Origin: Macrostomum lignano
Taxonomy: Eukaryota
DNA: 61,064 nucleotides
Direction: 5' to 3'
NCBI GenBank assembly: GCA_002269645.1
Contig: NIVC01002772.1
Coordinates: 1-61,064, forward strand
A model generated the notes under the pieces. It did not search any database and had not been told where the DNA came from. It saw only the letters and a program-made list of their open reading frames with translations. Each line of letters begins with the position of its first letter. Position 1 is the stretch's first letter. Both the position numbers and the translations under genes were made by a program. Positions 1 to 59,975 of this stretch are shown piece after piece.

Positions 1-227
1 TTTTGTAAATTTTAAGTTTACTAAGCCGGCTATTGCGTGGGTTAAATGTGTCAATCGATCTCGGACTTTTGTGTTTTAATTCTATTTATCAGTCAGCTCA
101 AAGACAACTAGTGCAAGTTGAGTCAGTCAACTTTTCCAATTTGCTTACAGTCTCGCGTCTAATTGCTTGTGTTAAAATTAAAATTTCGCTGTTTTTAGGC
201 CTAGTGTTTAAAAGTTTGCTTTTTGAA

Positions 228-14464
<14,237 letters not shown>

Positions 14465-15125: not shown

Positions 15126-15379
15126 GTGTCAGAGGCGCTGTGTAACTCACCCCTTGAAGATGTCACACCAGCCTTCAGCAAGCTTTGGATGTCTTCCAAA
15201 GCATCGCAACGAAATTCTAGGCTTTAGGCAGTCCGTTCGCGTGTTACATTTATTGTACCTGGCACCATAATTTGCTGCATTAATGATGCATTTGGGTTTG
15301 TCAATTTATTCTAATTGTTAACTAAGAATGCGCAAAGTTGGTATTGCTAATTTTTAATACTGCAATTTGAGTGTCCGTA

Positions 15380-16686
15380 CGAGGGATACTCCAAAAGTTT
15401 TGCAATTCAACCACTTGCGCAAGTCGCACAATCTTCAAAACCAACTCTCTGTACAATAAACATGTACATAGTCCCCACCTCAATTTTCAAGTGAATTCAT
15501 ACATATACGCCTGCTCAGCCCCCAGTCAAAGTCAGAGACTCCTTAACTGTACAGCTGCAGCCATGGAATTGAATCGTGAGCAGAATCGGCTACTAATTTG
15601 GTACTGCCACAAGCGAAAGCTCACGGCGCTTGAGACTCATGCCGAGCTACTAGCAACATTGGAGGCTCAAGCGCCGTCATATGCTACGGTTACACGCTGG
15701 TACCGCGAGTTCCAGGCCGGCAGGACCAGCTTTTCTGACGACCCCCGGCCGGGAGACCTCCGACAGCAGTGACGGAGGAAAACATCGCTGCAGTGCAGGA
15801 GCTGATTCATCAGGATCCGCGAATCACCACGGACATGCTAGCTATGAATGTCGGCATTGGATCGGCAGCGGTCGATACGATTCTACACGATCACCTAAGA
15901 GTCAGGAAGCTTTGTGCCCGATGGATACCCCACATCCTGACAGATGCTCAAAAACAGGCCCGCATGGAATTCTGTCAGTTTCTCATCGATCGATATGAGC
16001 ACGGGAGCCATCAGCGCCGCTCTGAGGTCATCACTGGTGATGAGACGTTTCTCTATCATTTTGACGTCGAGACAAAGCGCAGCAGTGCAGAGTGGGTGCC
16101 GGAAGGTGGTCAACGACCCCTGAAAGCAAGGCGGTCCCGGTCCCAGGGCAAGCGGATGTTTGCCATCTTCTTCGACTCACAAGGCGTGGTGGCGATGGTG
16201 AAGCTGGAGGGTCAAGCTACAGTCACTGCTCGATGGTACACTGAAGAGTGCTTGCCAGTCGTGATCGACAGCGTGACCCAGAGGGCGCCAAGGACGGGAA
16301 TGCGAGGGCGGAAGCTTCACCATGACAACGCCCCCGCCCACACGGCTGCTGCAACTCGAGCGTTCCTGGACCAAGAGGGCATTTCAACGCTACCACACCC
16401 GGCCTACTCACCAGACCTCGCCCCCTGCGACTTCTGGCTCTTTCCAGAAATCAAAAAGTCGCTTAGGGGGCGCAGGTTTCAGTCCGACGAGGAGCTGGAG
16501 CAGGCGGCGAAGGAGGCGATTGACGGCATCCCAATTGAAGACTTCCAGGGCTTGATGAACAAGTGGCTCGGACGAGCGCACAAGTGTTTGCAGTTCCGGG
16601 GAGCCTACTTTGAAGGATTGTAATAGAAAAGTTTGGCAAAATTAACTTTAAATAGTCGAATTGCAAAACTTTTAGAGTATCCCTCG
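15380..16686 (+). mobile_element. Mariner (DD34D) transposon, 1307 bp, irritans-like, recent insertion
   Basis: 29-bp TIRs CGAGGGATACTC(C/T)AAAAGTTTTGCAATTC (15380-15408 and 16658-16686, one mismatch). TA duplications at 15378-79 and 16687-88. The paralogous site in copy 2 has a single TA (33867-68). Subfamily is inferred from the TACGAGGG end and the N-terminus. Confidence 0.97.
15563..16623 (+). CDS. Mariner transposase, ~353 aa, one -1 frameshift at 15751-15753
   Basis: HTH N-terminus MELNREQNRLLIWY, WIPHILT, GDETFLY, HDNAPAH and YSPDLAPCDFWLF, with 34 residues between the second and third Asp. Adding one G restores the canonical PGRP linker. Confidence 0.95.
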
Positions 16687-21310: not shown

Positions 21311-22636
21311 GAGAATGGAAGTCGAAGACGCTTCCAGGTATACACCCCTGAGAGAATGACATGGTAGCTAGATGGACATCGCATTTTTTAATTGCGACAT
21401 CTCCTGGAATAGGAGAATAAGGATAATGTATCTAATCCCGACAGACGAGCGACAATGTTCTTGGCGGCACAGACTGGCTGTATCCGGTGGTAGCTACTTA
21501 TTTTGTCCAGCAGGAAGTTCCTGCCAGTTGGTTGGATCTGAATCTATAGCGCAACACTATTCACGGAGCAAGCCGGAATCAGCGCGGAACTCCAGCCGCG
21601 GTGTCATTCCAATCGGCAACCAACGCCAGCTTCTACCTGTATGTTACGCTTGGTGACAGCCTGAGACTTCTCAAGAACAATGCCAGCTCAGAATTCTCGG
21701 TGGCCGCAACGTTCGTTTGAGCTACGTAGATTCCAATGGCCCTAACTGTCGAAGCTACCGCCTGCTACTGACTGCACCAACGCCTGGCGTGCTGATATCC
21801 GACAGTGTTGGAAAACTCATGGCAGTTGCGTGGAACGTCAAAGACTATGTTCGCAACGTCAATTTTTCATTTAGTTGCGATTCAGGTAAGATTCTCTGTG
21901 TAGTAGCACTTAGCCTATATAGATGTAGAATTTTGATTATAATGTTGTTTATTTATTACGTGAGCCGAACGACTGAATGAAAGGCATGTAATGTTGGTAA
22001 ATCAAGTAAGTTAACCCGAATGTTAAATTTAAATATAACCACATTTGCGGTTAAATTTACATGCATTCAGCTTGTCAGTCAAACTACATTTCTAAAAATT
22101 AAAGCTGGATAAGGACATACGGATGCCTTCGGTTAAATTATTGTAAACATAATATTTTAGAGACAAAACAGCCCATCTGCGCAATAATCGGGACTGTTGC
22201 TAGATTTAACATTAGATCAAGACTCCTTTAAACGTTTAAAATGTTTGATATAACAAACGCTTATACCACCGATTGAAAATAATAAACTTTAGAGCAGGAT
22301 CTGACAAAATGGCAGCATACTAGATATGTTTTGCTACTTTCTGCGTCAAATAAAATGCTTTCTTTGTTTTGCTCTGTTGAATTTGAATCACTTCTAGCAC
22401 GCCATTTTTTGTAAAGTTTTAAGTTTACTAAGCGGCTATTGCGTGGGTTAAATGTGTCATCGAATCTCTGACTTTTGGTGTTTTAATTCTATTTATCAGT
22501 CTAGCTCAATAAGACAACTAGTGCAAGTTGAGTCAGTCAACTTTTCCAATTTGCTTACAGTCTCGGTCTAATTGCTTGTGTTAAAATTAAAATTTCGCTG
22601 TTTATTAGGCCTAGTGTTTAAAAGTTTGCTTTTGAA

Positions 22637-33009
<10,373 letters not shown>

Positions 33010-35484: not shown

Positions 35485-38400
35485 TCACACTTGGCTGATC
35501 GGAGCGCCGAAAAACCGGCCGCCAGCCGGGGCGGCGCGCACGAATCGCGGGGGCGGCGGCGGCGGCGCGCCCTGCTGCGGGAGGTAGAGGCGCAGCGTGG
35601 CCGTTACCACCTGCTGCTGCTGCCGGTGCTGCTGGAAGGCCGCCGAGCTGCCCGAAATGGGCGGCGTTGCAGCTGGCGAGGCCTCGCCGCCGCTCTCCTC
35701 CGGGATGGTGTTCAGCGACCGCTGGCTGGCCGTGTAGGCCGCCTCCGCCGCAGCCGCAGCCGCCGCCTCCGGGTAGCTGGGCGGCGAGGGCCGGACTGGC
35801 GGCGGCGGCGACTCGTCTGAGGAGGCGGAGGACGAAGAAGATGAGGAGGACGGCGAGGAGCCCCGTCGGCGCCTCCGAGACCGCCTATGTCGGTGCGCGG
35901 CCGGCCGCCTGCCGTTCTCGTCCTCGCTGTCGCTGCTGTAATCGTCATAGTCGTCGTTGGAGCTCGGCGACGCGCCCGATTGCTGCAGTGCCTGCCGACG
36001 TGGCGGCTTCGGTGACGGCGGCGGCCGGAGGTGGTGCGGCGGCAGCGCCTGAGGTGCCGGACTGGCGACGGCGGCCACCAAGGCGGCATTGGCGACGGCG
36101 GCAGCGACCCCAGCGACCAGCGGGCCGCCCAGGCAGGCGGTCAGCAGCGGCGAGCCCGGGAAGGCGGAGGCAGCAAAGGCGGCCAGGGCGGTCGGAGCGG
36201 CCAGGGCGGCGGCCCAGAGCAGCGCCGCCAGCGGCCAGTCCGGCCTGAACTGCGGCCTCCGCTTCGACAGCTGCTGCTGCTGGCCCGAGGCCTCCACGTT
36301 GTCGCTTCTCTGCTTCTGTCTGCTTCCAGAGTCTGCCTCTTCTGCCGGCCTGGTGTCTTCTGCTCCTGGCCAGGGGGTCAGGGCCAGTTCGGCGGCGGCG
36401 GGGGACGGCGGGGGCTGCAGGCTGAGTTGCTGCAAAGTGGGGGAGAAATTGTTAGCTTTGCAGCCACCCTCACCATCTCAGTCTCACCCAACTCTGTCTC
36501 ACCCACCTCAGTCTCACTCACCTCAGTCTCACCCACCTCAGTCTCACCCATCTCACTCTCACCCATTTTACCCTCACCCATCTCAGTCTCACCCACCTCA
36601 GTCTCACCCACCTCAGTCTCACCCATCTCAGTCTCACCCACCTCAGTCTCACCCACCTCAGTCTCACCCACCTCAGTCTCACCCACCTCAGTCTCACCAA
36701 TCTCAGTCTCACCCATCTCAGTCTCACCCATCTCAGTCTCCCCCATGTCACTCTCACCCATCTCAGTCTCCCCCATGTCACTCTCACCCATCTCACTCTC
36801 ACCCATGTCAGTCTCACCCATCTCACTCTCACCCATCTCAGTCTCCCCCATCTCACTCTCACCCATCTCAGTCTCCCCCATGTCACTCTCACCCATCTCA
36901 GTCTCACCCATGTCACTCTCACTCATCTCAGTCTCACCCATGTCACTCTCACCCATCTCAGTCTCACCCATCTCAGTCTCCCTCATGTCACTCTCACCCA
37001 TCTCACTCTCACCCATGTCAGTCTCACCCATCTCACTCTCACCCATCTCAGTCTCCCCCATGTCACTCTCACCCATCTCAGTCTCACCCATGTCACTCTC
37101 ACCCATCTCAGTCTCACCCATGTCACTCTCACCAATCTCAGTCTCACCCATCTCAGTCTCCCCCATGTCACTCTCACCCATCTCACTCTCACCCATGTCA
37201 GTCTCCCCCATGTCACTCTCACCCATCTCACTCTCACCCATGTCACTCTCACCCATCTCAGTCTCACCCATGTTACCCTCACCCATCTCAGTCTCCCCCA
37301 TGTCACTCTCACCCATCCCAGTCCCCCATATGTCACTCTCACCCATCCCAGACCCCCCCCCATGTCGCTCTCACCCATCCCAGTCCCCCCATGTCACTCT
37401 CACCCATCTCACCCAGCTACATGCCACCCTCGCACATCATACTCTCCTCAGCGCCCCGGAGCCCAGCCACTTACAAAGACCAGCATCAGGTTCACAAAGA
37501 ACATGACGGGAAAGGCCAGGGCCGCTCCTGTGCAGGTCAGCAGGTTCAGAGGAATCCCAGATGCCCACAGCATCGCAGCCAGCTGCAGCAGGTTGATGAG
37601 GCACAGCGCGGACTGCAATTTACGGGGATGTTGGTGAGGGCCGATGAAGGATTTGTCATGGTGGAGATGGAAAGAGGTCAGTTGACCCCCCCCAAAGATC
37701 CTCACTCACTAATCCACAGACTAAAAACTTCAGACAAGACAAAAAAATCGCAGCAGAACTCACGCAGACTACTGCCGGCAGTAGTTTGCAGAAGACGGCC
37801 AGGCTGGCCAGGGCGGCGGCGGCGAGCAGCAGCGACATCAGGCCGGCCATCTTGCCGGCGTCGATCCAGTCGGGAGAGTGAAAGTCGAACACTGGCCCGG
37901 ACACCGTGTGCTGCAGGCCCAGCTGACTGAATCGCTGGCTGACGTCCTTGATTCGAGCCCCGGCCTGCAGGTAAGCCCTCGTGCTGTTCAAGCCGCTGAG
38001 CTGGAGCACGCTCTGCACGAGTTCGAGCTCCTTGGACGGCGGAATGTACTGCAGATGGGGGTGCCTGGGCTGCACAGCGTACTGCTCCGGCTTGGGCAGC
38101 AGCAGGGAGTTGGCGAACTCGTAGGACATACCGGACTGGGAATACCAGCTGGTCAGGCAGGTGTAAAACCTGCCAGGGCTGATCACCCCGTGCTTGTCCA
38201 CCAGCCGGCCCCTGTCCGCCTCCAGCTGCGGGATTCGGGATTATTGGGGTGACGATTCGTTGCCTGGATTTCTCACCTGCCTGCATTTCATTTCTCACCT
38301 GCCTGCATTTCATTTCTCACCTGCCTGCATTTCATTTCTCACCTGCCTGCATCTCATTTCTCATCTGTCTGCATCTTATTTCTCACCTGCCTGCATCTCC

Positions 38401-41400
38401 TTTCTCACCTGCCTGCATCTCCTTTTTCACCTGTCTGCATCTCATTTCTCACCTGCCTGCATCTCATTTCTCACCTGCCTGCATCTCATTTTTCATCTGC
38501 CTGCATCTCATTTTTCATCTGCCTGCATCTCGTTTTTCACCTGCCTGCATCTCATTTCTCACCTGTCTGCACCTTATTTCTCACCTGCCTGCATCTCATT
38601 TCTCACCTGCCTGCATCTCATTTCCCATCTGCCTGCATCTCATTTCTCACCTGCCTGCATCTCAATTTTCATCTGCCTGCATCTCATTTCCCATCTGCCT
38701 GCATCTCATTTCTCACCTGCCTGCATCTCAATTTTCATCTGCCTGCATCTCATTTCTCATCTGCCTGCATCTCAATTTTCATCTGCCTGCATCTCATTTT
38801 TCATCTGCCTGCATCTCATTTCTCACCTGCCTGCATCTCATTTTTCATCTGCCTGCATCTCATTTTTCATCTGCCTGCATCTCATTTCTCACCTGCCTGC
38901 ATCTCATTTTTCATCTGCCTGCATCTCATTTTTCATCTGCCTGCATCTCATTTTTCATCTGCCTGCATCTCGTTTTTCACCTGCCTGCATCTCATTTCTC
39001 ACCTGTCTGCACCTTATTTCTCACCTGCCTGCATCTCATTTCTCACCTGCCTGCATCTCATTTCCCATCTGCCTGCATCTCATTTCTCACCTGCCTGCAT
39101 CTCAATTTTCATCTGCCTGCATCTCAATTTTCATCTGCCTGCATCTCATTTCCCATCTGCCTGCATCTCATTTCTCACCTGCCTGCATCTCAATTTTCAT
39201 CTGCCTGCATCTCATTTCTCACCTGTCTGCACCTTATTTCTCACCTGCCTGCATTTCATTTCTCACCTGCGAGAATCTCATTTCTCACCTGCCGGAATCC
39301 CATTTCTTTTCTTACCTAATTCTCTTTTAATCCAACACAAAATATCCAATCTTTACCTACCTGAATCACAATGCACCCACTTGAATCCCATTCAACCCAC
39401 CTGAATCCCATTCAACCCACCTGAATCCCATTCAACCCACCTGAATCCCATTCAACCCATCTGAATCCCATTCAACCCACCTGAATCCTAGTCAACCCAC
39501 CTGAATCCCATTCAACCCACCTGAATCCCATTCAACCCACCTGAATCCCAGTCAGCCCACCTGAATCCCATTCAACCCACCTGAATCCCATTCAACCCAC
39601 CTGAATCCCATTCAACCCACCTGAATCCCAGTCAACCCACCTGAATCCCATTCAACCCACCTGAATCCCAGTCAACCCACCTGAATCCCTGTCAATCACG
39701 CAGAGAACTCCCTCTTCCTATTCCCAGGTGACTCACCGCAGTCAGGTCGTACTCATCGAACCTGCCAGTCTGCACGAGCAGGTGAGCAGCCAGAATGCCT
39801 TCGTCCGAGGCGGCCTCGGTGAAGTTCAGGCCGTCCTCCTTGGAGCTGAGCCTCGTGCTGATGCTGCCCAGCCGAACGTCCTCGTCAAAGCGGCTCTGCA
39901 GCCGCAGCAGCCAGGCCCGGAACTCATCCAGCCAGAACGGGCCGCTGCCGCTGCTATTGGCGAATGGCAGCTCGGCGAGGGCGAGGAACAGCCGCCTGGT
40001 GAGCAGCTGCTGACGAGGGTAGTCGATTTTCTGAGGGTCGGCGGGGTGGCGGGTTGGAAGGGCTTGGCCACGCGTGCTGGGTCTCGTTTAATCCCTGTCT
40101 CAACAACAGCTCGAATCCCACCCGAATCCCACCCAAATCCTAGCCAAATCCCATCAGAACCCCACCCAGCCCCATCAGAATGCCACCCCAGCCCTATCAG
40201 AATGCCACCCCAGCCTCATCAGAATCCCACCCCAGCCCTATCAGAATGCCACCCCAGCCTCATCAGAATCCCACCCCAGCCTCATCAGAATCCCACCCAA
40301 GCCTCATCAGAATCCCACCCAGCCTCATCAGAATCCCACCCCAGCCTCATCAGAATGCCACTCCAGCCTCATCAGAATCCCACTCCAGCCTCATCAGAAT
40401 CCCACCCCAGCCTCATCAGAATGCCACCCCAGCCTCATCAGAATCCCACCCAAGCCTCATCAGAATCCCACATCAGCCTCATCAGAATCCCAACCCAGCC
40501 TCATCAGAATGCCACCCCAGCCCCATCAGAATCCCAACCCAGCCTCATCAGAATCCCAAACTGCCTCATCAGAATCCCAACCCAGCCTCATCAGAAGGCC
40601 ACCCCAGCCCCATCAGAATCCCAACCCAGCCTCACCCCAATGCGGAGCTGCAGTGCTGAGTCAGCGTACAACAGTCTCCTGTTAGCCAGGAAGGTGAACT
40701 CCTGGCAGCGGGCCGGCAGCAGCTCCACCGGGTTGTAGTCGGTCAGCTCGGCCAGGCGCCAGCAGGCGACACCGCCGAGAAGGCAGGCGGAGCCGACGCC
40801 GATTCCAGCCAAGATGGCTGCCAGCCAGCGCCGCCGACGCGTGCTCAGGCATCGGGCAACCCGACGGTCGAGACGGCTGCCCAGGCTGCGCGGCAAGGAG
40901 AGCTTCGCGCTGGCTGACTCTCTGGCCAATCGGCAGCAGACCAGGTCGGCTCCGAGGCGCCGCCGTCGGGCGCAGTCGGCGGCCAGAACGGCAGGCACGC
41001 CGGCCAGGCACAGCAGGGCCAGCTGCAGTCCGTTGGCTGCCCAGTGCCGGCAAAGAAGGCGAACGGCGGCCAGGGGGTCAGCAGGGAGCCGGCGGCGGCC
41101 GCCTGGCACACCAGCAGGAATGCCAGGGTCTGGGGCGCCGTGCGCTGCATCAGCACTGGGATGACGGCCTGCGGGATTGGGGTCGTTTGAGGATGGTTTG
41201 TTGGTGGGAGTGGGAAGACTAATCTATGAGAAAGATAGTCTATGGGAAGAAGTCTGGGAAGAACAGTATGGGAAGAAAATTCTATGGGAAGAACAGTCTA
41301 TGGGTAGAATAGTCTATGGGAAGAATAGTCTATGGGAAGAACAGTCTATGGAAAGAACATTCTATGGGAAGAAAAGTCTATGGGAAGAATAGTCTATGGG

Positions 41401-44400
41401 AAGAACAGTCTATGGGAAGAAAAGTCTATGGGAAGAATAGTCTATGGGAAGAACAGTCTATGGGAAGAATAGTCTATGGGAAGAATAGTCTATGGGAAGT
41501 ATAGTCTATGGGAAGAATAGTCTATGGGAAGAAGTCTATGGGAAGTATAGTCTATGGGAAGAATAGTCTATGGGAAGAACAGTCTATGGGAAGTATAGTC
41601 TATGGGAAGAATAGTCTATGGGAAGAACAGTCTATGGGAAGAAGTCTATGGGAAGAATAGTCTATGGGAAGAACAGTCTATGGGAAGAACAGTCTATGGG
41701 AAGAAGTCTAAGGTATGGGAAGAAGTCTAAGGGAAGGATAGTCTATGGGAAGAAGTCTATGGGAAGAAGTCTATGGGAAGAATAGTCTATGGGAAGAATA
41801 GTCTATGGGAAGAAGTCTATGGGAAGAATAGTCTATGGGAAGAATAGTCTATGGGAAGAACAGTCTATGGGAAGAAGTCTATGGGAAGAATAGTCTATGG
41901 GAAGAACAGTCTATGGGAAGTATAGTCTATGGGAAGAATAGTCTATGGGAAGAAGTCTATGGGAAGTATAGTCTATGGGAAGAATAGTCTATGGGAAGAA
42001 CAGTCTATGGGAAGTATAGTCTATGGGAAGAATAGTCTATGGGAAGAACAGTCTATGGGAAGAAGTCTATGGGAAGAATAGTCTATGGATAGCGAAAGGA
42101 AATGACTCCATCATCACAGGTGGGCAGAAGGAACTCACGTGATGCTGGGCAGGCTCGCTAGTCTGGTACAGGTGATTGTAGCAATTGGCCATTAGCAAGC
42201 AATAGAAGGTGCCGATTCCCAGCTGAACAAATGGCAGCACCTGTAGGAATGGAGCAGGTGTGTTTTTTAATTTTCATAATATAATGATTTATTTAATGCC
42301 AAGCGGGATACACAATTCCAAACTTGATTGATTCTTCCGACTTCAGATTCGAATCCTACCAGTATACACGATATTCCCCAATCCCGATAGTTAAATCTAG
42401 GAACTATCCCCAATTCTAGACATAAAATCACGGCTCATATCCAAAATCCCTGTTCCCATATACCGATTATTAAATCCCAAATCCCGAATCCCTGCTTTCG
42501 AATACGAGATCCTAAATCCTAGATCCCGAATCCCAGATCCCACAGCTAAAATCCCAAATCCCAGGTTTTAAATCCCAGGTTCCAAATTCCAGATCCCAAC
42601 TCCCAAGTAAAAAATTCCAGATCGGAAATCCCAATGATTCCCAAATCTCAGATACCAAATCGCAGATCTCGAATCCCAGATCCCAAATCCCAGATCTCGA
42701 ATCCCAGATCCCAAATCTTCAACCCAATATACCAATACCCGATCCCGGATCCCAGCACGCACCTGCACGGACAGCAGGTCCAGCGGCACGCGGCACCAGC
42801 AGGCGAGCCCGAGGCCGCCGGTGACGGACAACAGCAGCAGCGGCAGGGTCAGGCAGGCGACAGTCAGCTGGCTGTGCAGCAGCGAGTGCGAGTCGAACAG
42901 GACGGCCATGACGTAGGCGCAGCAGCCGGCGATCAGGAGGCTCCACTTGGTCCAGTGAACGGCGCGGGTGGCCTCGCCGAGAGCCTCGTTGACTGACTGC
43001 TGCTCGTTGAATGCCACGAAGATGGGCTCCTCGTGCCGGCTGTTCTCCTCGGCGACCAGCTGCGGGGGCGGGTAGTGGTCTTGAGTTCGAGTCCCAGCAA
43101 AAAAAACAATACACACAGTCCCAGTTCCGAGTCCCAACAGTCACACAGTCCTAGTCCCGAGTCCCAACAGTCACACAGTCCTAGTCCTGAGTCCCAACAG
43201 TCACACAGTCCTAGTCCCGAGTCCCAACAGTCACACAGTCCCAGTCCCGAGTCCCAACAGTCACACAGTCCAATTCCCGAGTCCCAACAGTCACACAGTC
43301 CAAGTTCCGAGTCCCAACAGTCACACAGTCCCAGTCCCGAGTCCGGCGCGCCCACCTTGTTAAAGTGCTCCCACCAGGCGTCCAGCAGCCGCTTAGTCTT
43401 ATCAAGCGACCAGTCGTTAAGCGGTTGATTTTGCCGATATTCGCGCAGCAGATGTTCGGGACTCTTGAGCACCAAGGCGCTGAGCAGAGCCCGGCCGCTG
43501 GTCAGCCGGCCAGTGTCCGGGTCGCGGCTGGCGCCGCCAATCAGCTTCTCGGCTGGCCAGTTGATGAGCTTCTCGGCGAAGCCGGAGCAGCCAGGGCTCA
43601 GCGTGTCCAGCACGCTGTGGTTGGCCCTGGCCCGGCCGGCCGGGGGGCATTGCGGATCGCCGGGGTCCAGGCAGGGGCGCCGGGTGTAGCCGTGCCTCAG
43701 GCCCACGCTGGACAGGGCCCGGGCCAGTCGGTCTATCGGGTGATGACGCCGCTCGGAGTCTGGGGACGCGCCTGGGTGCTTAGGCGGGAAGCTGCTAGTC
43801 TTGATAATGCGGGTGTATGACTGCAGCACCGACTGCGGGTCCAGGTTGGTCCAGCGGTAGGTCCGGTCCAGGTCCTTCAGGCTGGCCGGCGATGCGTTGG
43901 GGAGGCTGCGAACGGGAGCGGATTGGAGATGGAGAAGAGTGAGGTTTCAGGTGGTTTAGGGTGAAATTGTAGATGGAAAAGGACGAGCTTGGGGGATTAG
44001 GGCACGAGATTGAGTAGATTAGGGTGATATTGAGGGGATTAGGATGAGATTTAGGGGATTAGGGTGAGATTGAGGGGATTAGGATGAGATTGAAGGGATT
44101 AGGGTGAGATTGAGGGGATTAGGGTGAGATTGAAGGGATTAGGGCGAGATTGAGGGGATTAGGGTGAGATTAAGGGGATTATGGTGAGCGGAAAGACAGA
44201 GATAGGTGATATTGTGGATGGAGAAGGGTGAAATTGCAAATAGATGGAGAGGATATTAGGGCTACTAAAAGTCAGAATAGATCTTTTTGTTTTCTGTTAA
44301 CTAAGCCCTACTCAGAGTAGCGTGTTCAGCGCATTCCAGCGCATCGAGCAGCAGAATGTAGAAAGCAAGGCCGGCAGGCAAATGGAAAGTGAGCCAGTTG

Positions 44401-47400
44401 AGTCAGCAGGGCACTGGCTGGACTCTCACGCACCGGGGGACCCCCAGGCTGATGACTTTTTTCTCTTTTTTTCGAAGCACTTACTCTATTAAGAAAGAAG
44501 ACAGGCAGGCGGTCACAGGTAGAAAATGAGAATTCGCAGTGAGAGTGGCGAGTGCGAGTATCCAGTGGGGGGTGGGTATCCCGAGTTTTGAGTCATCTGA
44601 TTCAAGCAGTTTGAGACTCATTCAAGAGGCGCAGAGCTCGCCAATGCGCAGTGAAATGATTTTGAGGCAGGAGTTGAGCTGACAGGCACGCAGACAGATA
44701 TGAATCTATGAGTATGAGACATTCTGGCTGGGCTGGGGACCCACCGCAGCCGCTTTGTCTTCCGAGTGGGAGGGGCTCGGAGCGCATCTGTGCTTGAATT
44801 CCATTCCATAAAAGACAGTCGCCACTTGCCAGGCGCAATTTGGCCACTGTGTTCCTTTTTGGCGGGCAAATTCTGAGTTGGGTTATTCATACGGCCTGTT
44901 ATTATTGGGGACTTTGACGATTTTGAGGATCTCAGAATCGGGATTTCAGAATCGGGATTTCAGAATCGGGATTTCAGAATCGGGATTTCAGGGTCGGGAT
45001 TTCAGAATCGGGATTTCAGGGTCGGGATTTCAGATTCGGGATCAAGATCTCAGAATCGGGATTTCAGGGTCGGGATTTCAGATTCGGGATCAAGATCTCA
45101 GAATCGGGATTTCAGAATCGGGATTTCAGAATCGGGATTTCAGAATCTAGATCTCAGAATCGGGATTTCAGGGTCGGGATTTCAGAATCTAGATCTCAGA
45201 ATCGGGATTTCAGGGTCGGGATTTCAGATTCGGGATCAAGATCTCAGAATCGGGATTTCAGGGTCGGGATTTCAGATTCGGGATCAAGATCTCAGAATCG
45301 GGATTTCAGATTCGGGATCAAGATCTCAGAATCGGGATTTCAGAGTCGGGATCAAGATCTCAGAATCGGGATTTCAGAGTCGGGATCAAGATCTCAGAAT
45401 CTAGATCTCAGAATCGGGATTTCAGGGTCGGGATTTCAGAGTCGGGATCAAGATCTCAGAATCGGGATTTCAGAGTCGGGATCAAGATCTCAGAATCGGG
45501 ATTTCAGAGTCGGGATCAAGATCTCAGAATCGGGATTTCAGAGTCGGGATCAAGATCTCAGAATCGGGATTTCAGAGTCGGGATCAAGATCTCAGAATCG
45601 GGATTTCAGAGTCGGGATCAAGATCTCAGAATCGGGATTTCAGATTCGGGATCAAGATCTCAGAATCGGGATTTCAGATTCGGGATTTCAGAAATGCGGC
45701 TCTCACTAGCTGCCCATCAGTCCGATTCCCGGCAGCCGGACTGACCCCCTCGGCCCGAGCAGCTTGGCGCCCTCCCAGAAGCAGTCCAACGGGGTGACAA
45801 TCCGGCAGGGCAGCAGGGCCTCCATGAAGCCGCGCACGTGATCGGGGATCTCCAGCTGGCCGAGGTCGAATTTCAGGCACAGCTGCTCCAGCCTGATGGA
45901 CTGCACGGGCAGGTTGAAGACTCGAACGTCTGCGCTGACTACCCGTTCCAGCAGGCGCATGTGGGCGAGCAGCTGCCGCTTCGTCAGGACGGAGTCCGCG
46001 GCGGTGTTGTCGTCGGCGGCGTCGGCTGATGGCGGCTCCTGCCGACGAGAGGGGAGCTGCATGAGCAGCTGAGTTGAGGAGGACATCACGCTGGGATAGT
46101 TGCGGAGCAGCTCTGAATCCTGGGCCTTGGCGCTGCGACCTTCGTCTGTGGGTTGAGTGGGAGATGGAATTAGGCTAACCCTTCTCTGTTGTGAGTAAAC
46201 TGGAATGGATTTTGAAGTTGGAATTGTCAGATTTTGAAGTTGGAATGGTCAGATTCTGAAGTTGGAATGGTCAGATTCTGAAATTGGAATTGTCAGATTC
46301 TGAAATTGGAATTGTCAGATTCTGAAATTGGAATGGTCAGATTCTGAAGTTGGAATTGTCAGATTCTGAAATTGGAATTGTCAGATTCTGAAGTTGGAAT
46401 TGTCAGATTCTGAAATTGGAATTGTCAGATTCTGAAATTGGAATGGTCAGATTCTGAAGTTGGAATTGTCAGATTCTGAAATTGGAATGGTCAGATTCTG
46501 AAATTGGAATTGTCAGATTCTGAAATTGGAATGGTCAGATTCTGAAGTTGGAATTGTCAGATTCTGAAATTGGAATGGTCAGATTCTGAAATTGGAATGG
46601 TCAGATTCTGAAATTGGAATTGTCAGATTCTGAAATTGGAATTGTCAGATTCTGAAATTGGAATGGTCAGATTCTGAAATTAGAATGGTCAGATTCTGAA
46701 ATTGGAATGGTCAGATTCTGAAGTTGGAATGGTCAGATTCTGAAATTGGAATTGTCAGATTCTGAAATTGGAATGGTCAGATTCTGAAATTGGAATGGTC
46801 AGATTCTGAAGTTGGAATTGTCAGATTCTGAAGTTGGAATTGTCAGATTCTGAAATTGGAATGGTCAGATTCTGAAGTTGGAATTGTCAGATTCTGAAAT
46901 TGGAATTGTCAGATTCTGAAATTGGAATGGTCAGATTCTGAAATTGGAATGGTCAGATTCTGAAATTGGAATGGTCAGATTCTGAAATTGGAATGGTCAG
47001 ATTCTGAAGTTGGAATTGTCAGATTCTGAAATTGGAATGGTCAGATTCTGAAGTTGGAATTGTCAGATTCTGAAATTGGAATTGTCAGATTCTGAAATTG
47101 GAATTGTCAGATTCTGAAATTGGAATGGTCAGATTCTGAAATTAGAATGGTCAGATTCTGAAATTGGAATGGTCAGATTCTGAAATTGGAATGGTCAGAT
47201 TCTGAAATTGGAATGGTCAGATTCTGAAGTTGGAATTGTCAGATTCTGAAATTGGAATTGTCAGATTCTGAAATTGGAATGGTCAGATTCTGAAGTTGGA
47301 ATTGTCAGATTCTGAAATTGGAATGGTCAGATTCTGAAATTGGAATGGTCAGATTCTGAAATTGGAATTGTCAGATTCTGAAATTGGAATTGTCAGATTC

Positions 47401-50400
47401 TGAAATTGGAATGGTCAGATTCTGAAATTAGAATGGTCAGATTCTGAAATTGGAATGGTCAGATTCTGAAATTGGAATGGTCAGATTCTGAAATTGGAAT
47501 GGTCAGATTCTGAAGTTGGAATTGTCAGATTCTGAAATTGGAATTGTCAGATTCTGAAATTGGAATGGTCAGATTCTGAAGTTGGAATTGTCAGATTCTG
47601 AAATTGGAATGGTCAGATTCTGAAATTGGAATTGTCAGATTCTGAAATTGGAATGGTCAGATTCTGAAGTTGGAATTGTCAGATTCTGAAATTGGAATGG
47701 TCAGATTCTGAAACTGGAATGGTCAGATTCTGAAATTGGAATTGTCAGATTCTGAAATTGGAATGGTCAGATTCTGAAATTGGAATGGTCAGATTCTGAA
47801 ATTGGAATTGTCAGATTCTGAAATTGGAATTGTCAGATTCTGAAATTGGAATGGTCAGATTCTGAAATTGGAATGGTCAGATTCTGAAATTGGAATTGTC
47901 AGATTCTGAAATTGGAATGGTCAGATTCTGAAATTGGAACTGTCAGATTCTGAAATTGGAATTGTCAGATTCTGAAATTGGAATGGTCAGATTCTGAAAT
48001 TGGAATGGTCAGATTCTGAAATTGGAATGGTCAGATTCTGAAGTTGGAATTGTCAGATTCTGAAATTGGAATTGTCAGATTCTGAAATTGGAATTGTCAG
48101 ATTCTGAAATTGGAATGGTCAGATTCTGAAGTTGGAATTGTCAGATTCTGAAATTGGAATTGTCAGATTCTGAAATTGGAATTGTCAGATTTTGAAGTTG
48201 GAATTGTCAGATTTTGAAGTTGGAATTGTCAGATTTTAAAGTTGGAATTGTCAGATTCTGAAATTGGAATTGTCAGATTCTGAAATTGGAATTGTCAGAT
48301 TCTGAAATTGGAATGGTCAGATTCTGAAATTGGAATTGTCAGATTCTGAAATTGGAATGGTCAGATTCTGAAGTTGGAATTGTCAGATTCTGAAATTGGA
48401 ATGGTCAGATTCTGAAATTAGAATGGTCAGATTCTGAAATTGGAATTGTCAGATTCTGAAATTGGAATGGTCAGATTCTGAAGTTGGAATTGTCAGATTC
48501 TGAAATTGGAATGGTCAGATTCTGAAGTTGGAATTGTCAGATTCTGAAATTGGAATTGTCAGATTCTGAAATTGGAATTGTCAGATTCTGAAATTGGAAT
48601 GGTCAGATTCTGAAGTTGGAATTGTCAGATTCTGAAATTGGAATTGTCAGATTCTGAAATTGGAATTGTCAGATTTTGAAGTTGGAATTGTCAGATTTTA
48701 AAGTTGGAATTGTCAGATTCTGAAATTGGAATTGTCAGATTCTGAAATTGGAATTGTCAGATTCTGAAATTGGAATGGTCAGATTCTGAAGTTGGAATTG
48801 TCAGATTCTGAAATTGGAATTGTCAGATTCTGAAATTGGAATTGTCAGATTTTGAAGTTGGAATTGTCAGATTCTGAAGTTGGAATTGTCAGATTTTAAA
48901 GTTGGAATTGTCAGATTCTGAAGTTGGAATGGTCAGATTCTGAAGTTGGAATTGTCAGATTCTGAAATTGGAATTGTCAGATTCTGAAGTTGGAATTGTC
49001 AGATTCTGAAACAGGAATTGTCAGATTCTGAAACAGGAATTGTCAGATTCTGAAACAGGAATTGTCAGATTCTGAAATTGGAATTGTCAGATTCTGAAAT
49101 TGGAATTGTCAGATTCTGAAGTTGGAATTGTCAGATTCTGAAATTGGAATTGTCAGATTCTGAAATTGAAATTGTCAGATTTTGAAGTTGGAATTGTCAG
49201 ATTTTGAAGTTGGAATTGTCAGATTCTGAAGTTGGAATTGTCAGATTCTGAAGTTGGAATTGTCAGATTCTGAAGTTGGAATTGTCAGATTCTGAAGTTG
49301 GAATTATCAGATTCTGAAATTGGAATGGTCAGATTCTGAAATTAGAATTGTCAGATTCTGAAGTTGGAATTGTCAGATTCTGAAATTAGAATTGTCAGAT
49401 TCTGAAGTTGGAATTGTCAAATTCTGAAACAGGAATTGTCAGATTCTGAAATTGGAATTGTCAGATTCTGAAGTTGGAATTTTCAGATTCTGAAACAGGA
49501 ATTGTCAGATTCAGAGCTAGAATTTCGGCCTTGGCAGCTGCTGGCAATGTTAATTTGCACTTTTAAGGCCAGGTCACAAGACACGAAACTGTAACCAGCT
49601 AAAAATTTATCTATCTTCAAAATCTGGCGTCAAACGTTTGCCAAAGACCACCCAGGTCGGGGCTGGCTCTTCTCCGTCTTCCCTGTCTTCAAAACGCATT
49701 ATCAAGTTTGCAGTAAACTGAACCCGAGCCCCACAATCATTCTCATTTGGCATCCCCACCTCACGGCATAATCTAAAGACTGCACCGAAGCTGCCAGAGG
49801 GCAGTTCTTAAACAATATTTCCTGCGGCAAAAAAATGTTCTCCAAGTTCAAGTTCGCCACTGCATCCTGGCGCTTATGTTGTAAAATCATGGGAATGAGC
49901 TTGTAAAAATATAACCAACTTTACCGCCACAATATATAATTATTAAGGAGAGCTGAGAGGGGGACCATTGCGCACAACACAGCCGCTGAGCTGATGGGAT
50001 AGTGGAAAGAACTAAACGAAGAAGGGCTCAGAGTTCTGAGGCAGAGGTGAGGCAATACTGAGGCAGAGGTGAGGCAATGCTGAGGCAGAGGTGAGGCAAT
50101 GCTGAGGCAGAGGTGAGGCAATGCTGAGGCAGAGGTGAGGCAATGCTGAGGCAGAGGTGAGGCAATGCTGAGGCAGAGGTGAGGCAATGCTGAGGCAGAG
50201 GTGAGGCAATGCAGAGGCAGATGTGCGGCAGAGGTGAGGCAGAGGTGAAGCAATGCTGAGGCAGAGGTGAGGCAATGCTGAGGCAGATGTGCGGCAGAGG
50301 TGAGGCAGAGGTGAAGCAATGCTGAGGCAGAGGTGAGGCAATGCTGAGGCAGAGGTGAGGCAATGCTGAGGCAGAGGTGAGGCAATGCTGAGGCAGAGGT

Positions 50401-53400
50401 GAGGCAATGCTGAGGCAGAGGTGAGGGAATGCTGAGGCAGAGGTGAGGCAATGCTGAGGCAGATGTGCGGCAGAGGTGAGGCAGAGGTGAAGCAATGCTG
50501 AGGCAGAGGTGAGGCAATGCTGAGGCAGATGTGCGGCAGAGGTGAGGCAGAGGTGAAGCAATGCTGAGGCAGAGGTGAGGCAATGCTGAGGCAGATGTGC
50601 GGCAGAGGTGAGGCAGAGATGAGGCAGATTTAATCCAGAGATCCCTCAGTGCCACTGCTACGAGCATAAGTCAGCACATGATTGCAATTCAGACCCACAG
50701 CACAGGCGGACAGGGTAACTGCCTTAGTGGCATAAACTATCTTGAATAACAAAAGCAGCAGAAGCGTCTCCGAGCGCTTTGTATAAACAGTTATGAGGGG
50801 AGCTGGAATTTCCTGGAATTTGCAGAGCGGAATTCTGCTGGAACCACCGCAGTCTGCAGCCATTAATTTATTAAGGTCGATGTTTTTGTAGCGATGGAGA
50901 CTAAGTTTCGCTATTTCTGGGGCGAAACCCTTCTGGTAGGATCAGAATTGGATCAGTTTGGGAAGGGGATTCTTTTAATTGCGGGGATGAATTCGGTTTG
51001 CGGGAATCCGGACTTTTAACTAGGGACTCTGCGACTTGGACCCGGCATTGGGGAGTGAAACTATCATTGTGGGATTTCTGAGGTCGGGATTTAATTATTG
51101 GGTCTCAAGGATGATCGGGACTTGATGATTGGGAAACAAGGATCAGGACTTGATGATAGGAAACCAATGATCGGGACTTTATGATCGGAAACCAAGGATC
51201 GGGACTTTGTGATCGGAAACCAAGGATCGGGACTTTGTGATCGGGAACCAATGATCGGGACTTTATGATCGGAAACCAAGGATCGGGACTTTGTGATCGG
51301 AAACCAAGGATCGGGACTTTGTGATCGGGAACCAAGGATTGGGACTTTGTGATCGGAAACCAAGGATCGGGACTTTGTGATCGGGAACCAAGGACTGGGA
51401 CTTTGTGATCGGGAACCAAGGATTGGGACTTTGTGATCGGAAACCAATGATCGGGACTTGATGATCGGAAATCAAGGATCGGGACTTTGTGATAGGAAAC
51501 CAATGATCGGGACTTTATGATCGGAAACCAAGGATCGGGACTTTATGATAGGAAACCAATGATCGGGACTTTATGATCGGAAACCAAGGATCGGGACTTT
51601 ATGATAGGAAACCAATGATTGGGACTTTATGATCGGAAACCAAGGATCGGGACTTTGTGATCGGGAACCAAGGATTGGGACTTTGTAATCGGAAACCAAG
51701 GATTGGGACTTTGTGATCGGAAACCAAGGATCGGGACTTTGTGATCGGGAACCAAGGATCGGGACTTTATGATCGGAAATCAAGGATCGGGACTTTATGA
51801 TCGGAAACCAATGATCGGGACTTAATGATCGAAAATCAAGGATCGGGACTTTGTGATCGGGAACCAAGGATCGGGACTTGATGATCGGAAACCAATGGTC
51901 GGGACTTGATGGTGGGGACTAAATCGGGACTTGATGGTCGGGACTGGATCGGAAATTTATGGTCAGGACTGGATCGGGAATTGATGGTCGGGACTGGATC
52001 GGGAATTCATGGTCGGGACTGGATCGGGAATTGATGGTCGGGAATGGATCGGGACTTGATGGTCGGGACTGGATCGGAAATTTATGGTCAGGACTGGATC
52101 GGGAATTGATGGTCTGGACTGGATCGGGAATTGATGGTCGGGACTGGATCGGGAATTCATGGTCGGGACTGGATCGGGAATTCATGGTCGGGAATGGATC
52201 GGGAATTCATGGTCGGGACTGGATCGGGAATTGATGGTCGGGAATGGATCGGGAATTGATGGTCGGGTTTGGATCGGGAATTGATGGTCGGGAATGGATC
52301 GGGAATTGATGGTCGGGAATCAATGATTCCGACTCAATCATCGGGACTCAAGCACCTAGAAATTGTTACTCAATGATTGGGGTTTTATGATTGGGACTCA
52401 AGGATCGGGACTTAATGGTCGGGACTCAATAATTGAAGCACAAGGATTGGGACTGAATGGATCTTTGTCGGTCACCAACAAGAAAGTACTTGTTAAAAGA
52501 GCCATCAATCATGCTGCACAGCAACGTCAAGCCATTGTGAGCTATTAGTAAACAATTAAAGAATAAAAAAATGAATTCCACATTAATTTTACTGCTGCCA
52601 CAAGGCGGGGCACAAAATTTCACGCAGGTTTTCACTTTATCTTGGAAAGAAGTTCATACAGAGTTGCAAGCGGGACGGCGCACAGCACAGGCCACCAGCA
52701 CAATAGCTAGATGATGCATAACCCCCTTAATACCTATTGGCGTGGGTGGCCATTTTGTGGTCTCTCTCTCTCTCTCTCCCACCTTAGACCCCCGGCCGCA
52801 GCGAGCATTGCATATTTAATGAGGGTATTCTTGTCTTTCGCGTCTCTTTTCAATTTTTTACTGCATATACAGTCTTCTGCCTTTCGGATAGGGAGAGGGA
52901 GAGAGAGAATTCTGTGCGGCTGCAGCAGTCTGCGGTGGGTTCCTGCACTCCTTCATCACTTTATATCTGTGTGGCCGCCGCTGCTGTTTCGCAGCCATGG
53001 GTTTAATCTTGCCAAACCTGCACGCGTGCTGAACAAAACAGCTCGCATACTGCAGGGAGGGGTTGCGAGAAGAACGGGCAGCGCGGGCATGAAATAAGAA
53101 AATGGCCCGCTTCTAGGAGAGAAGGGGGAGCTCTTATGCAGCATTGGGCCACCCAGGCAGTCGAGTTTCCGGGGGGAGGGGGGTTGCTGGCACAGCTAGG
53201 TGCGCGGAAAGTGGTATTATAAATAATAATAATACTATAAATCATCTATACAATAATACGGTGTGTTATATGTGATGCCCAGCAGAAACTGGCGGACACG
53301 ACTCTGACGGATTTGCTGAAACCGGATTGCGGTCAGCAATAGACAGCAAGCAATGCAGGGCGCTGCATTATGAACAGCGAGCTCGTTTCAGCGCAAAAAA

Positions 53401-57652: not shown

Positions 57653-57974
57653 GGTTTTCCTTTTTTTCTATTTTCAATAGCATCGGTCCTGAAGGTGTGC
57701 GCCGCGCCGAAATCCCCGGAGGACCGCAGTTTCGTCGTCCGCAAATTATTGAGGAAAAATGCCGCCACCCTTGCTATATACTGTAGCTGTTCGAACTGCG
57801 GAATCCCATTAATTTTCCCCCCGCCCGCGCCGGCCATATCTGAGGGACAGCTGCGCCCGTTGCCGAGTGCCATCTAACTAAACTGGCTTGGGGGCTGCGT
57901 ACGGCCTTGTTCTAATTAATTCCTTGACACCACACCGATGTTGCTGGCATTCCTGACCCCTGAGACTTCGTGTC

Positions 57975-58479
<505 letters not shown>

Positions 58480-58904
58480 CCCAGGTGTCCTGAGGCCAAT
58501 CCATCACAGCTACAGTGGCATCGGTCTCTCTGCGCAGATTCTCTCCTGGAAGCAATTTCCGAAGGCCTGAAGAAAAACTATAGTCATGGGAGCAGCTGTG
58601 ACATCGCGACTATCACGCGTGACCAGCTTCCAGGGACTGGCCAGATCCTATCTCTGTCCTTTCTTTCTTTATAGGCTTCTTTTTTGTTCCCAAAATCCTA
58701 AAGCCAGGCAAGCCACCGATGCGTCATTTTAGACGGCTCTCCTCTGCGCGTTTTTTGTCTTATTTTTCTGCTTTTAAAAGTCACGGCCTGCTCGGCTGAC
58801 TGCAGCAGGTGAACTCTCTGCTCCACTGTCTGGCACTGGCGATCCTTTGTTGTCTTTGCTGTGAGAATGGATGGGTTGGGAAGGTGGGTGAATGTGGCGT
58901 GAGA

Positions 58905-59975
58905 GAGGAGAGAATGGAGAGAGTGAAGAGAGCGGAGAGAGCGGAGAGTGGAGAGAGCGGAGAGCGGAGAGAGCGGAGAGAGTGGAGAGAGCGGAGAGAG
59001 CGGAGAGTGGAGAGAGCGGATAGAGTGGAGAGAGCGGAGAGAGCGGAGAGAGCGGAGAGCGGAGAGAGCAGACAGAGCAGAGAGAGCGGAGAGAGCGGAG
59101 AGAGCGGAGAGAGCAGAGAGAGCGGAGAGTGGAGAGAGCGGAGAGAGCGGAGAGCGGAGAGAGCAGACAGAGCAGAGAGAGCGGAAAGAGCGGAGAGAGC
59201 GGAGAGAGCAGAGAGAGCGGAGAGAGCGGAGAGTGGAGAGAGCGGAGAGTGGAGAGAGCGGAGAGTGGAGAGAGCGGAGAGCGCAGAGAGAGCGGAGAGT
59301 GGAGAGAGCGGAGAGAGCGGAGAGAGCGGAGAGCGGAGAGAGCAGACAGAGCAGAGAGAGCGGAGAGAGCGGAGAGAGCGGAGAGAGCAGAGAGAGCGGA
59401 GAGCGCAGAGAGAGCGGAGAGTGGAGAGAGCGGAGAGAGCGGAGAGAGCGGAGAGCGGAGAGAGCAGACAGAGCAGAGAGAGCGGAGAGAGCGGAGAGAG
59501 CGGAGAGAGCAGAGAGAGCGGAGAGAGCAGAGAGAGCGGAGAGAACGGAGAGAGCGGAGAGAGCAGAGAGAGCGGAGAGAGCGGAGAAAGCAGAGAGAGC
59601 GAAGAGAGCGGAGAGAGCGGAGAGAGCGGAGAGAGCGGAGAGAGCGGAGAGAGCGGAGAGAGCGGAGAGAGCAGAGAGAGCGGAGAGAGCAGAGAGAGCG
59701 GAGAGAACGGAGAGAGCGGAGAGAGCGGAGAGAGCGGAGAGAGCAGAGAGAGCGGAGAGAGCGGAGAAAGCAGAGAGAGCGAAGAGAGCGGAGAGAGCGG
59801 AGAGAGCGGAGAGAGCGAAGAGAGCAGAGAGAGCGGAGAGAGCGGAGAGAGCAGAGAGAGCGGAGAGAGCGGAGAAAGCAGAGAGAGCGAAGAGAGCGAA
59901 GAGAGCGGAGAGAGCAGAGAGAGCGGAGAGAGCGGAGAGAGCAGAGAGAGCGGAGAGAGCGGAGAGAGCAGAGAG
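58905..59975. repeat. 9-bp purine-rich repeat (GAGAGAGCG)n with variants
   Basis: Directly visible; source of the ERA/SAL-type spurious ORFs. Confidence 0.96.

Follow-up and report, generated by a model that had tools for sequence, protein, structure and literature searches.

A Patched gene of the flatworm Macrostomum lignano without the membrane-buried charges of TM4 and TM10

The Drosophila ptc S2 allele (D584N) has lost the first aspartate of the fourth transmembrane helix (TM4) of Patched, and its product still sequesters Hedgehog, does not repress Smoothened and is dominant negative when over-expressed. In the mouse PTCH1 NNQ mutant (D499N/D500N/E1081Q; Zhang et al. 2018, 10.1101/352443) SMO suppression and cholesterol redistribution were abolished but ShhN binding was not; an earlier note on the DNA analysed here had likewise stated that NNQ binds Hedgehog without repressing Smoothened. 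The C. elegans proteins PTC-1 and PTC-3 offer a precedent for Patched function without Hedgehog or Smoothened, and PTC-3 needs an intact permease transporter domain (PMC3078328). Here we analyse a stretch of 61,064 nucleotides of Macrostomum lignano DNA (GCA_002269645.1, contig NIVC01002772.1, positions 1 to 61,064; the window), from which a Patched gene of 11 coding exons was reconstructed on the minus strand, at 55012-35485. Like NNQ, the encoded protein has its three TM4/TM10 positions uncharged and its ectodomain intact; NNQ, however, is an engineered and near-isosteric change in a canonical protein, whereas the Macrostomum replacements are natural and bulky (Phe, Tyr and Met) and stand in a highly divergent membrane domain. 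The ptc S2 change also differs: it is an induced point mutation, affects one residue of a canonical Patched and does not represent the evolved state of a species. The Macrostomum pattern is the opposite of that of nematode PTC-3, whose sequence (P0042) keeps both GxGxDD and GIGVEF in our alignment. We put at about even the chance that this gene is the sole Patched ortholog of M. lignano and is no longer able to couple to an ion gradient.

The exact translation of exon 6 is VLPFVQLGIGTFYCLLMANCYNHLYQTSEPAQHH, in which Phe (42207-42205) and Tyr (42204-42202), residues Phe554 and Tyr555 of the model, lie opposite human PTCH1 D513 and D514 in both HMMER and MAFFT alignments, in agreement with the DD to FY replacement proposed in the earlier note. 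A phmmer comparison of a rough spliced model with PTCH1 chains of the PDB (9ms8_A, E=4e-62) pairs the QVLPFVQLGIGTFY region without gaps, and MAFFT alignments of 16-48 sequences gave the same TM4 register. The human PTCH1 used as tblastn guide, and as the "human" reference for the MAFFT alignments and for the identity values by region, was a hand-entered guide sequence; the TM4 register was cross-checked on PDB chains and on database proteins such as P0010. No Asp or Glu occupies the D513/D514-equivalent positions in the other reading frames of exon 6. In a family alignment of 36 sequences, the D513 column is acidic in 26 and holds Phe only in the Macrostomum gene. Exon 10 (37612-37475), encoding TM9-TM10, has no Asp, Glu, Lys or Arg, which extends the earlier observation that it lacks acidic residues. 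Its Met at 37504-37502 (Met1043) aligns with human E1095 in MAFFT, in a register that needs a two-residue gap and is less secure than that of TM4. The predicted TM10 helix (model residues 1029-1054; TGAALAFPVMFFVNLMLVF) is wholly uncharged, and buried charges of the ion relay of resistance-nodulation-division (RND) type are found neither there nor in TM4 (VLPFVQLGIGTFYCLLMANCY). An alternative exon carrying GxGxDD, or any other charged TM4- or TM10-like exon, was not detected in the window by regular-expression searches or by tblastn with human, Dugesia and Opisthorchis peptides, which returned exon 6 only. The GIGTFY motif is shared by four further M. lignano UniProt models of at least two sequence variants and is therefore not a sequencing error.

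The reconstructed gene comprises the following coding exons, in which ECD1 and ECD2 denote the two large extracellular domains:

Exon 1, 55012-54887, minus strand: start codon ATG at 55012-55010; MSGYYRHQ...MQLSQ, 42 codons, with a GTGATT donor; N-terminus equal to that of UniProt model P0192.
Exon 2, 54722-54509, minus strand: cytoplasmic N-terminal region and TM1 (WKLFLFLTLVAFSLCTLGL), aligned to the TM1 region of PTCH1.
Exon 3, 46145-45707, minus strand: start of ECD1, with LEQLC, LLPC and PLDCFWEGAK; borders uncertain.
Exon 4, 43905-43356, minus strand: remaining ECD1, with RWTNLDP, GYTRRPCLDPGDPQCP and SPGCSGF; tblastn E=3e-19.
Exon 5, 43059-42763, minus strand: TM2 and TM3, where the sterol-sensing domain begins; TM3 GLG motif retained.
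Exon 6, 42240-42139, minus strand: TM4, VLPFVQLGIGTFYCLLMANCY; AG acceptor and GTGAGT donor.
Exon 7, 41168-40636, minus strand: TM5 to TM7, including the cytoplasmic loop after TM6, and the first part of ECD2; 533 nt, one below a multiple of three.
Exon 8, 40030-39737, minus strand: ECD2 (FWLDEFRAWLLRLQ..., LLVQTG); tblastn E=2e-7.
Exon 9, 38225-37764, minus strand: remaining ECD2 and TM8; tblastn E=2e-9; exon 9/10 junction the same in P0008.
Exon 10, 37612-37475, minus strand: TM9-TM10, without Asp or Glu.
Exon 11, 36429-35485, minus strand: TM11 and TM12, both rich in Ala, preceded by a long TM10-TM11 loop and followed by a low-complexity C-terminal tail; stop codon TGA at 35487-35485.

All 20 splice sites of this model are canonical GT-AG sites, with consistent phases except at exon 7. 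M. lignano gene predictions, in at least two variants 4-5 residues apart, share its exon junctions, and that between exons 10 and 11 is borne out by model P0008. Exon 3 is delimited differently in UniProt model A0A1I8HIG6 (P0192), with an acceptor at 46112 and a donor at 45746 (GTCAGT); these borders shorten loops of ECD1 by 11 and 13 residues, and both versions are in frame. Nearly every intron of the gene is filled by a minisatellite array of its own (periods of 14-48 nt, the largest a 22-mer repeated 150 times), the arrays spanning 36465-37411, 38268-39689, 40152-40634, 41211-42088, 43112-43344, 44927-45693, 46208-49512 and 50036-52318; some of them give long spurious open reading frames, for example of GETEMGESDM repeats.

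The comparison with other flatworms qualifies what has been lost. Patched sequences were aligned from Dugesia japonica (BAI49944), Schmidtea mediterranea (D2ILS0), Schistosoma, Trichobilharzia, Opisthorchis/Clonorchis, Paragonimus, Calicophoron and Mesocestoides, the residue pattern being read from P0045, P0185, P0019, P0022, P0023, P0029, P0034 and P0187. In all of these the first TM4 position is Asp or Glu and the second is variable, while the TM10 position is always basic and never Glu (Arg in Dugesia and Schmidtea, Arg or Lys in the trematodes and a cestode); among them, Macrostomum alone lacks both the TM4 acid and a TM10 charge. The flatworm pattern recalls the acid-base arrangement of bacterial AcrB, D407/D408-K940. 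We found no description of such a TM4 acid/TM10 base pair in the literature searched. On these alignments, the right baseline for a flatworm Patched is a TM4 acid with a TM10 base and not D-D-E, and the peculiarity of Macrostomum is that both have gone, the TM4 acid being replaced by Phe and the TM10 base by Met. In the tree, the planarian proteins BAI49944 and D2ILS0 stand nearest among the functional relatives; they are similarly diverged from vertebrate PTCH1, with an equally poorly conserved TM8-12 region, and differ from the Macrostomum protein in having a TM4 acid pair (DE or EE) and a TM10 Arg. In planarians, pathway activity is lowered or raised by RNA interference (RNAi) of hh or ptc (PMC5055395). 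Because planarian ptc is a working pathway repressor, loss of the TM10 Glu is old and compatible with function. The earlier claim that all three acidic triad residues had been lost holds in so far as all three positions are uncharged here, but the TM10 Glu was already absent from functional planarian Patched.

The variation that functional Patched proteins show at the TM10 site (planarians have Arg, a Drosophila montana sequence Cys), together with the intact scaffold and ectodomains, also lends some weight to the idea that the Macrostomum protein still represses Smoothened within conventional Hedgehog signalling, transporting or sequestering sterol without the canonical charges, by passive conduction, through other polar residues or with a partner protein. 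We consider this quite unlikely. The 26 acidic residues in the 36-sequence D513 column include that of every named Patched from vertebrates, flies, nematodes and other flatworms, and no functional Patched in the survey lacks an acid at that first TM4 position. The predicted TM4 and TM10 helices of Macrostomum are, moreover, fully uncharged, and the residues neutralised here abolish the activity of mouse PTCH1 when replaced (10.1101/352443).

Macrostomum Patched is not the only Patched in the databases without these charges. Patched-like entries lacking the TM4 acid were also found in Fragariocoptes (KAG9511138), Tropilaelaps (OQR67094) and Paramacrobiotus (XP_055339601) and among several Logan proteins, the whole set being P0006, P0012, P0020, P0024, P0025, P0027, P0032, P0035 and P0066. 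Some of these mite, tardigrade and Logan entries are without any TM10 charge; Varroa, another mite lacking the TM4 acid, and Tropilaelaps keep a TM10 acid. The mite and tardigrade entries, which bear the Patched name or can be recognised as such, resemble the Macrostomum protein in their non-acidic TM4 positions and differ from it in belonging to arthropod and tardigrade lineages and in being uncharacterised. Judging from such entries, natural charge-less relatives of Patched may be a recurrent and unstudied phenomenon.

By sequence, fold and conserved ectodomain, the encoded protein is a true Patched. An HMMER search, exhaustive over 1.84 billion representative proteins, matched the Patched of other animals at 28-32% identity, the best full-length matches (Saccoglossus, insects) carrying that name, and among PDB chains PTCH1 was matched far better (E=4e-62) than NPC1 (4e-5). 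The Pfam Sterol-sensing family (PF12349) was recognised above its cut-off (30.1 bits against 22.3, E=5e-7), and the protein has 12 hydrophobic segments. The AlphaFold model, calculated on a sequence without one split-codon loop residue, had a mean predicted local distance difference test score (pLDDT) of 76.4 and a predicted template modelling score of 0.73, with pLDDT mostly at 80-96 in TM1-TM10 and in both extracellular domains. The helices sit where Patched helices are expected, and the two large extracellular domains follow TM1 and TM7. In Foldseek comparisons with the PDB the best 15 matches were all PTCH1 (E down to 2e-44, target-normalised TM-score 0.76-0.85), followed by NPC1/NPC1L1 (E ~1e-20) and Dispatched (4e-12). 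The structural modelling suggested in the earlier note thus returned a confident Patched-like fold.

The 36-sequence alignment has 51 columns with a conservation of 90% or more, and the Macrostomum protein retains 45 of these, among them the six cysteines of ECD1 (C203, C227, C235, C337, C345 and C365); PLDCFWEG and, in full, PLDCFWEGAK are also kept, so that the cysteines and flanking motifs are present as first described. Family-invariant residues have thus not been lost at the neutral rate that would be expected of a pseudogene. Identity to human PTCH1 was 0.29 for Macrostomum and 0.22 for Dugesia in ECD1, 0.23 and 0.24 in the sterol-sensing domain, 0.27 and 0.30 in ECD2, and 0.17 and 0.19 in TM8-12. 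Region by region, by this measure, Macrostomum Patched is not more diverged from the human protein than Dugesia Patched.

The same gene is represented several times in the databases. Five near-identical fragments among the HMMER library matches are M. lignano UniProt entries, and a later search added A0A1I8HIG6, A0A1I8FUZ9 and A0A1I8F2U2; neither P0001 nor the open reading frame of exon 11 had an exact match in a contig. Many genes of M. lignano, a recent polyploid, are duplicated (PMC10733133, PMC10468722), and near-identical Patched copies fit such a history. In a neighbour-joining tree the Macrostomum protein was sister to the other flatworm Patched (Tricladida and Neodermata) in 128 of 200 bootstraps, on long branches, the position expected of a macrostomorph ortholog. 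We found no published description of this M. lignano gene in the literature searched.

The earlier note had inferred that the gene is a natural equivalent of NNQ, a candidate decoy (ligand sink), dominant-negative modulator or Smoothened-independent receptor, and had proposed a search of the host genome for other ptc paralogs. Recent polyploidy would offer spare copies for such divergence (PMC10733133, PMC10468722), and the residue pattern does resemble that of NNQ. A transport-dead protein remains a reasonable inference; the decoy or dominant-negative role, on the other hand, presupposes a canonical partner elsewhere in the genome, and none was found. Among the best 150 matches of the exhaustive HMMER search, whose library includes the UniProt proteome of M. 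lignano, those grouping with flatworms were the same gene or the Patched of other species, and a search of protein libraries seeded with Dugesia Patched returned no M. lignano protein. The gene branches at the position expected of the ortholog, and GIGTFY is present in every one of its known, near-identical copies. We therefore regard a decoy beside a canonical Patched as very unlikely, and the evidence favours a sole ortholog. It is probably the only Patched-type gene of M. lignano, present in several near-identical copies as a result of recent polyploidy.

The protein keeps the Patched scaffold, with a sterol-sensing domain, 12 membrane helices and the disulphide cysteines of both extracellular domains. 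The buried charges through which an ion gradient drives the transport cycles of RND-type proteins are replaced by Phe554/Tyr555 and Met1043. Without these charges, ion-coupled sterol transport would not be expected and, consequently, neither would canonical catalytic repression of Smoothened. Since the ectodomain is conserved, ligand is probably still bound. In a lineage with a rewired Hedgehog pathway, the protein would then be a receptor that binds Hedgehog, sequesters ligand or works independently of Smoothened. Smoothened was not found in the genome of the congener M. cliftonense, in an analysis that did not include M. lignano (10.64898/2026.07.29.741434). A broader proposal, which we advance only tentatively, is that the only Patched of M. 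lignano gave up ion-coupled transport while still being selected for its fold and ectodomain, leaving Hedgehog reception without catalytic inhibition of Smoothened by Patched, perhaps in M. cliftonense as well.

A number of observations weigh against this interpretation. The Pfam Patched family (PF02460) scored below threshold (16.1 bits against a cut-off of 23), and TM12 is poorly predicted in the AlphaFold model, as are loops and tails. The failure to find a paralog concerns protein libraries drawn from an incomplete proteome and not the genome, and ligand binding is deduced from conservation only. Nematodes without Smoothened keep and need the permease domain of Patched (PMC3078328), and loss of Smoothened alone would, on that basis, not predict loss of the charges. 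In exon 7, the reading frame breaks at a run of five C (41077-41073; ACCCCCTGG), and the translation of the window copy ends at a TGA (40847-40845) after 683 amino acids, containing TM1-TM5 only. The broken frame is also present in P0193, P0194 and P0001, three of the four UniProt models covering the site. The UniProt entries of M. lignano are gene predictions, and the assemblies ML2 and Mlig_3_7 were built on the same PacBio reads (PMC5730564), so that, if the window belongs to Mlig_3_7, these models are not independent evidence.

With six C instead of five, the coding sequence is open over 1,366 codons, with no other stops. Exon 7 then reads ...GSLLTPLAAVRLLCRHWAANGLQ..., identical to A0A1I8HIG6 (P0192), which requires six C and provides an intact version of the exon from the UniProt model of another assembly. 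A frame break placed near 41046 (...TPWPPFAFFAG/WAANG) was rejected: over 35 homologs the BLOSUM62 sum was 297 for the C-run switch against 6 for the later break, with a better fit in 32 of the 35 and recovery of the conserved P..A.R..C, and it is the former that equals P0192. Introns that would rescue the frame were likewise discarded, the only GT-AG choice (89 nt, 41111-41023) cutting off the end of TM5 together with the beginning of TM6 and the others needing GC donors and lengths of 29-53 nt. Either the C5 run is an error of the long-read consensus, or it is a lesion that only the window copy carries. Elsewhere in the window, a comparison of two duplicate copies (1-4990 and 22407-27416) shows 36 substitutions and 32 gap events; of these gaps 29 are single-base, and 14 of the 29 lie in homopolymers of at least 3. 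A ratio of indels to substitutions so close to 1:1 suggests that errors of the long-read consensus remain in the assembly.

The frame break at 41077-41073 and the premature stop at 40847-40845 could also be read as decay, in which Patched was lost, perhaps together with Smoothened, the loss of charge and then the frameshift being steps of pseudogenisation and no copy giving a functional protein. Agreeing with this are the broken frame of P0193, P0194 and P0001, the Pfam Patched score below its cut-off, the Ala-rich and poorly predicted TM11-12 and the reported lack of Smoothened in M. cliftonense. Yet there is one lesion in a 4.1-kb coding sequence, located in a homopolymer, an intact P0192 exists, and the rate of 1-nt indels in the window is typical of consensus noise. 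The canonical splice sites (20/20), the invariant residues kept (45/51), the confident fold and a divergence equal to that of functional planarian Patched also speak against decay, which we judge unlikely though by no means negligible.

The remainder of the window holds a direct duplication of 1-13000 and 22407-32336, about 22.4 kb apart and of 93-98% identity, which carries twice, on the plus strand, a gene for a replication helicase of the MCM family (Pfam MCM_OB, MCM P-loop and MCM_lid), the compared exons being in frame in both. It could be a tandem duplication or could represent uncollapsed haplotypes or homeologs of the polyploid. At 15371-16620 (plus strand) lies a Mos1/mariner-type transposase, with HTH_48 and DDE_3/Transposase_1 in overlapping open reading frames of different frames; this frame-shifted element is either degenerate or affected by another assembly indel. 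Upstream of the Patched gene, at 57971-58479 and 58901-59975, are long simple repeats, (TGTCTGTC)n and a 9-mer array of ~122 copies; the long open reading frames that they produce show no sign of coding value.

The way in which Patched represses Smoothened remains a matter of debate, and evidence for an ion-driven sterol pump comes mainly from engineered charge-neutralising mutants. If the sole Patched of M. lignano is indeed naturally without these charges, the species would provide a test case, either for a Patched that works without pumping or for a Hedgehog pathway that has been rebuilt or dismantled, and it is suited to such study, transgenesis and RNAi being workable in this animal. The flatworm-wide replacement of the TM10 Glu by Arg or Lys makes the "conserved triad" less universal than the mammalian literature implies, and the Macrostomum gene would, if the proposed reading is true, be a natural split of the ligand-binding role of Patched from its role as a pump.

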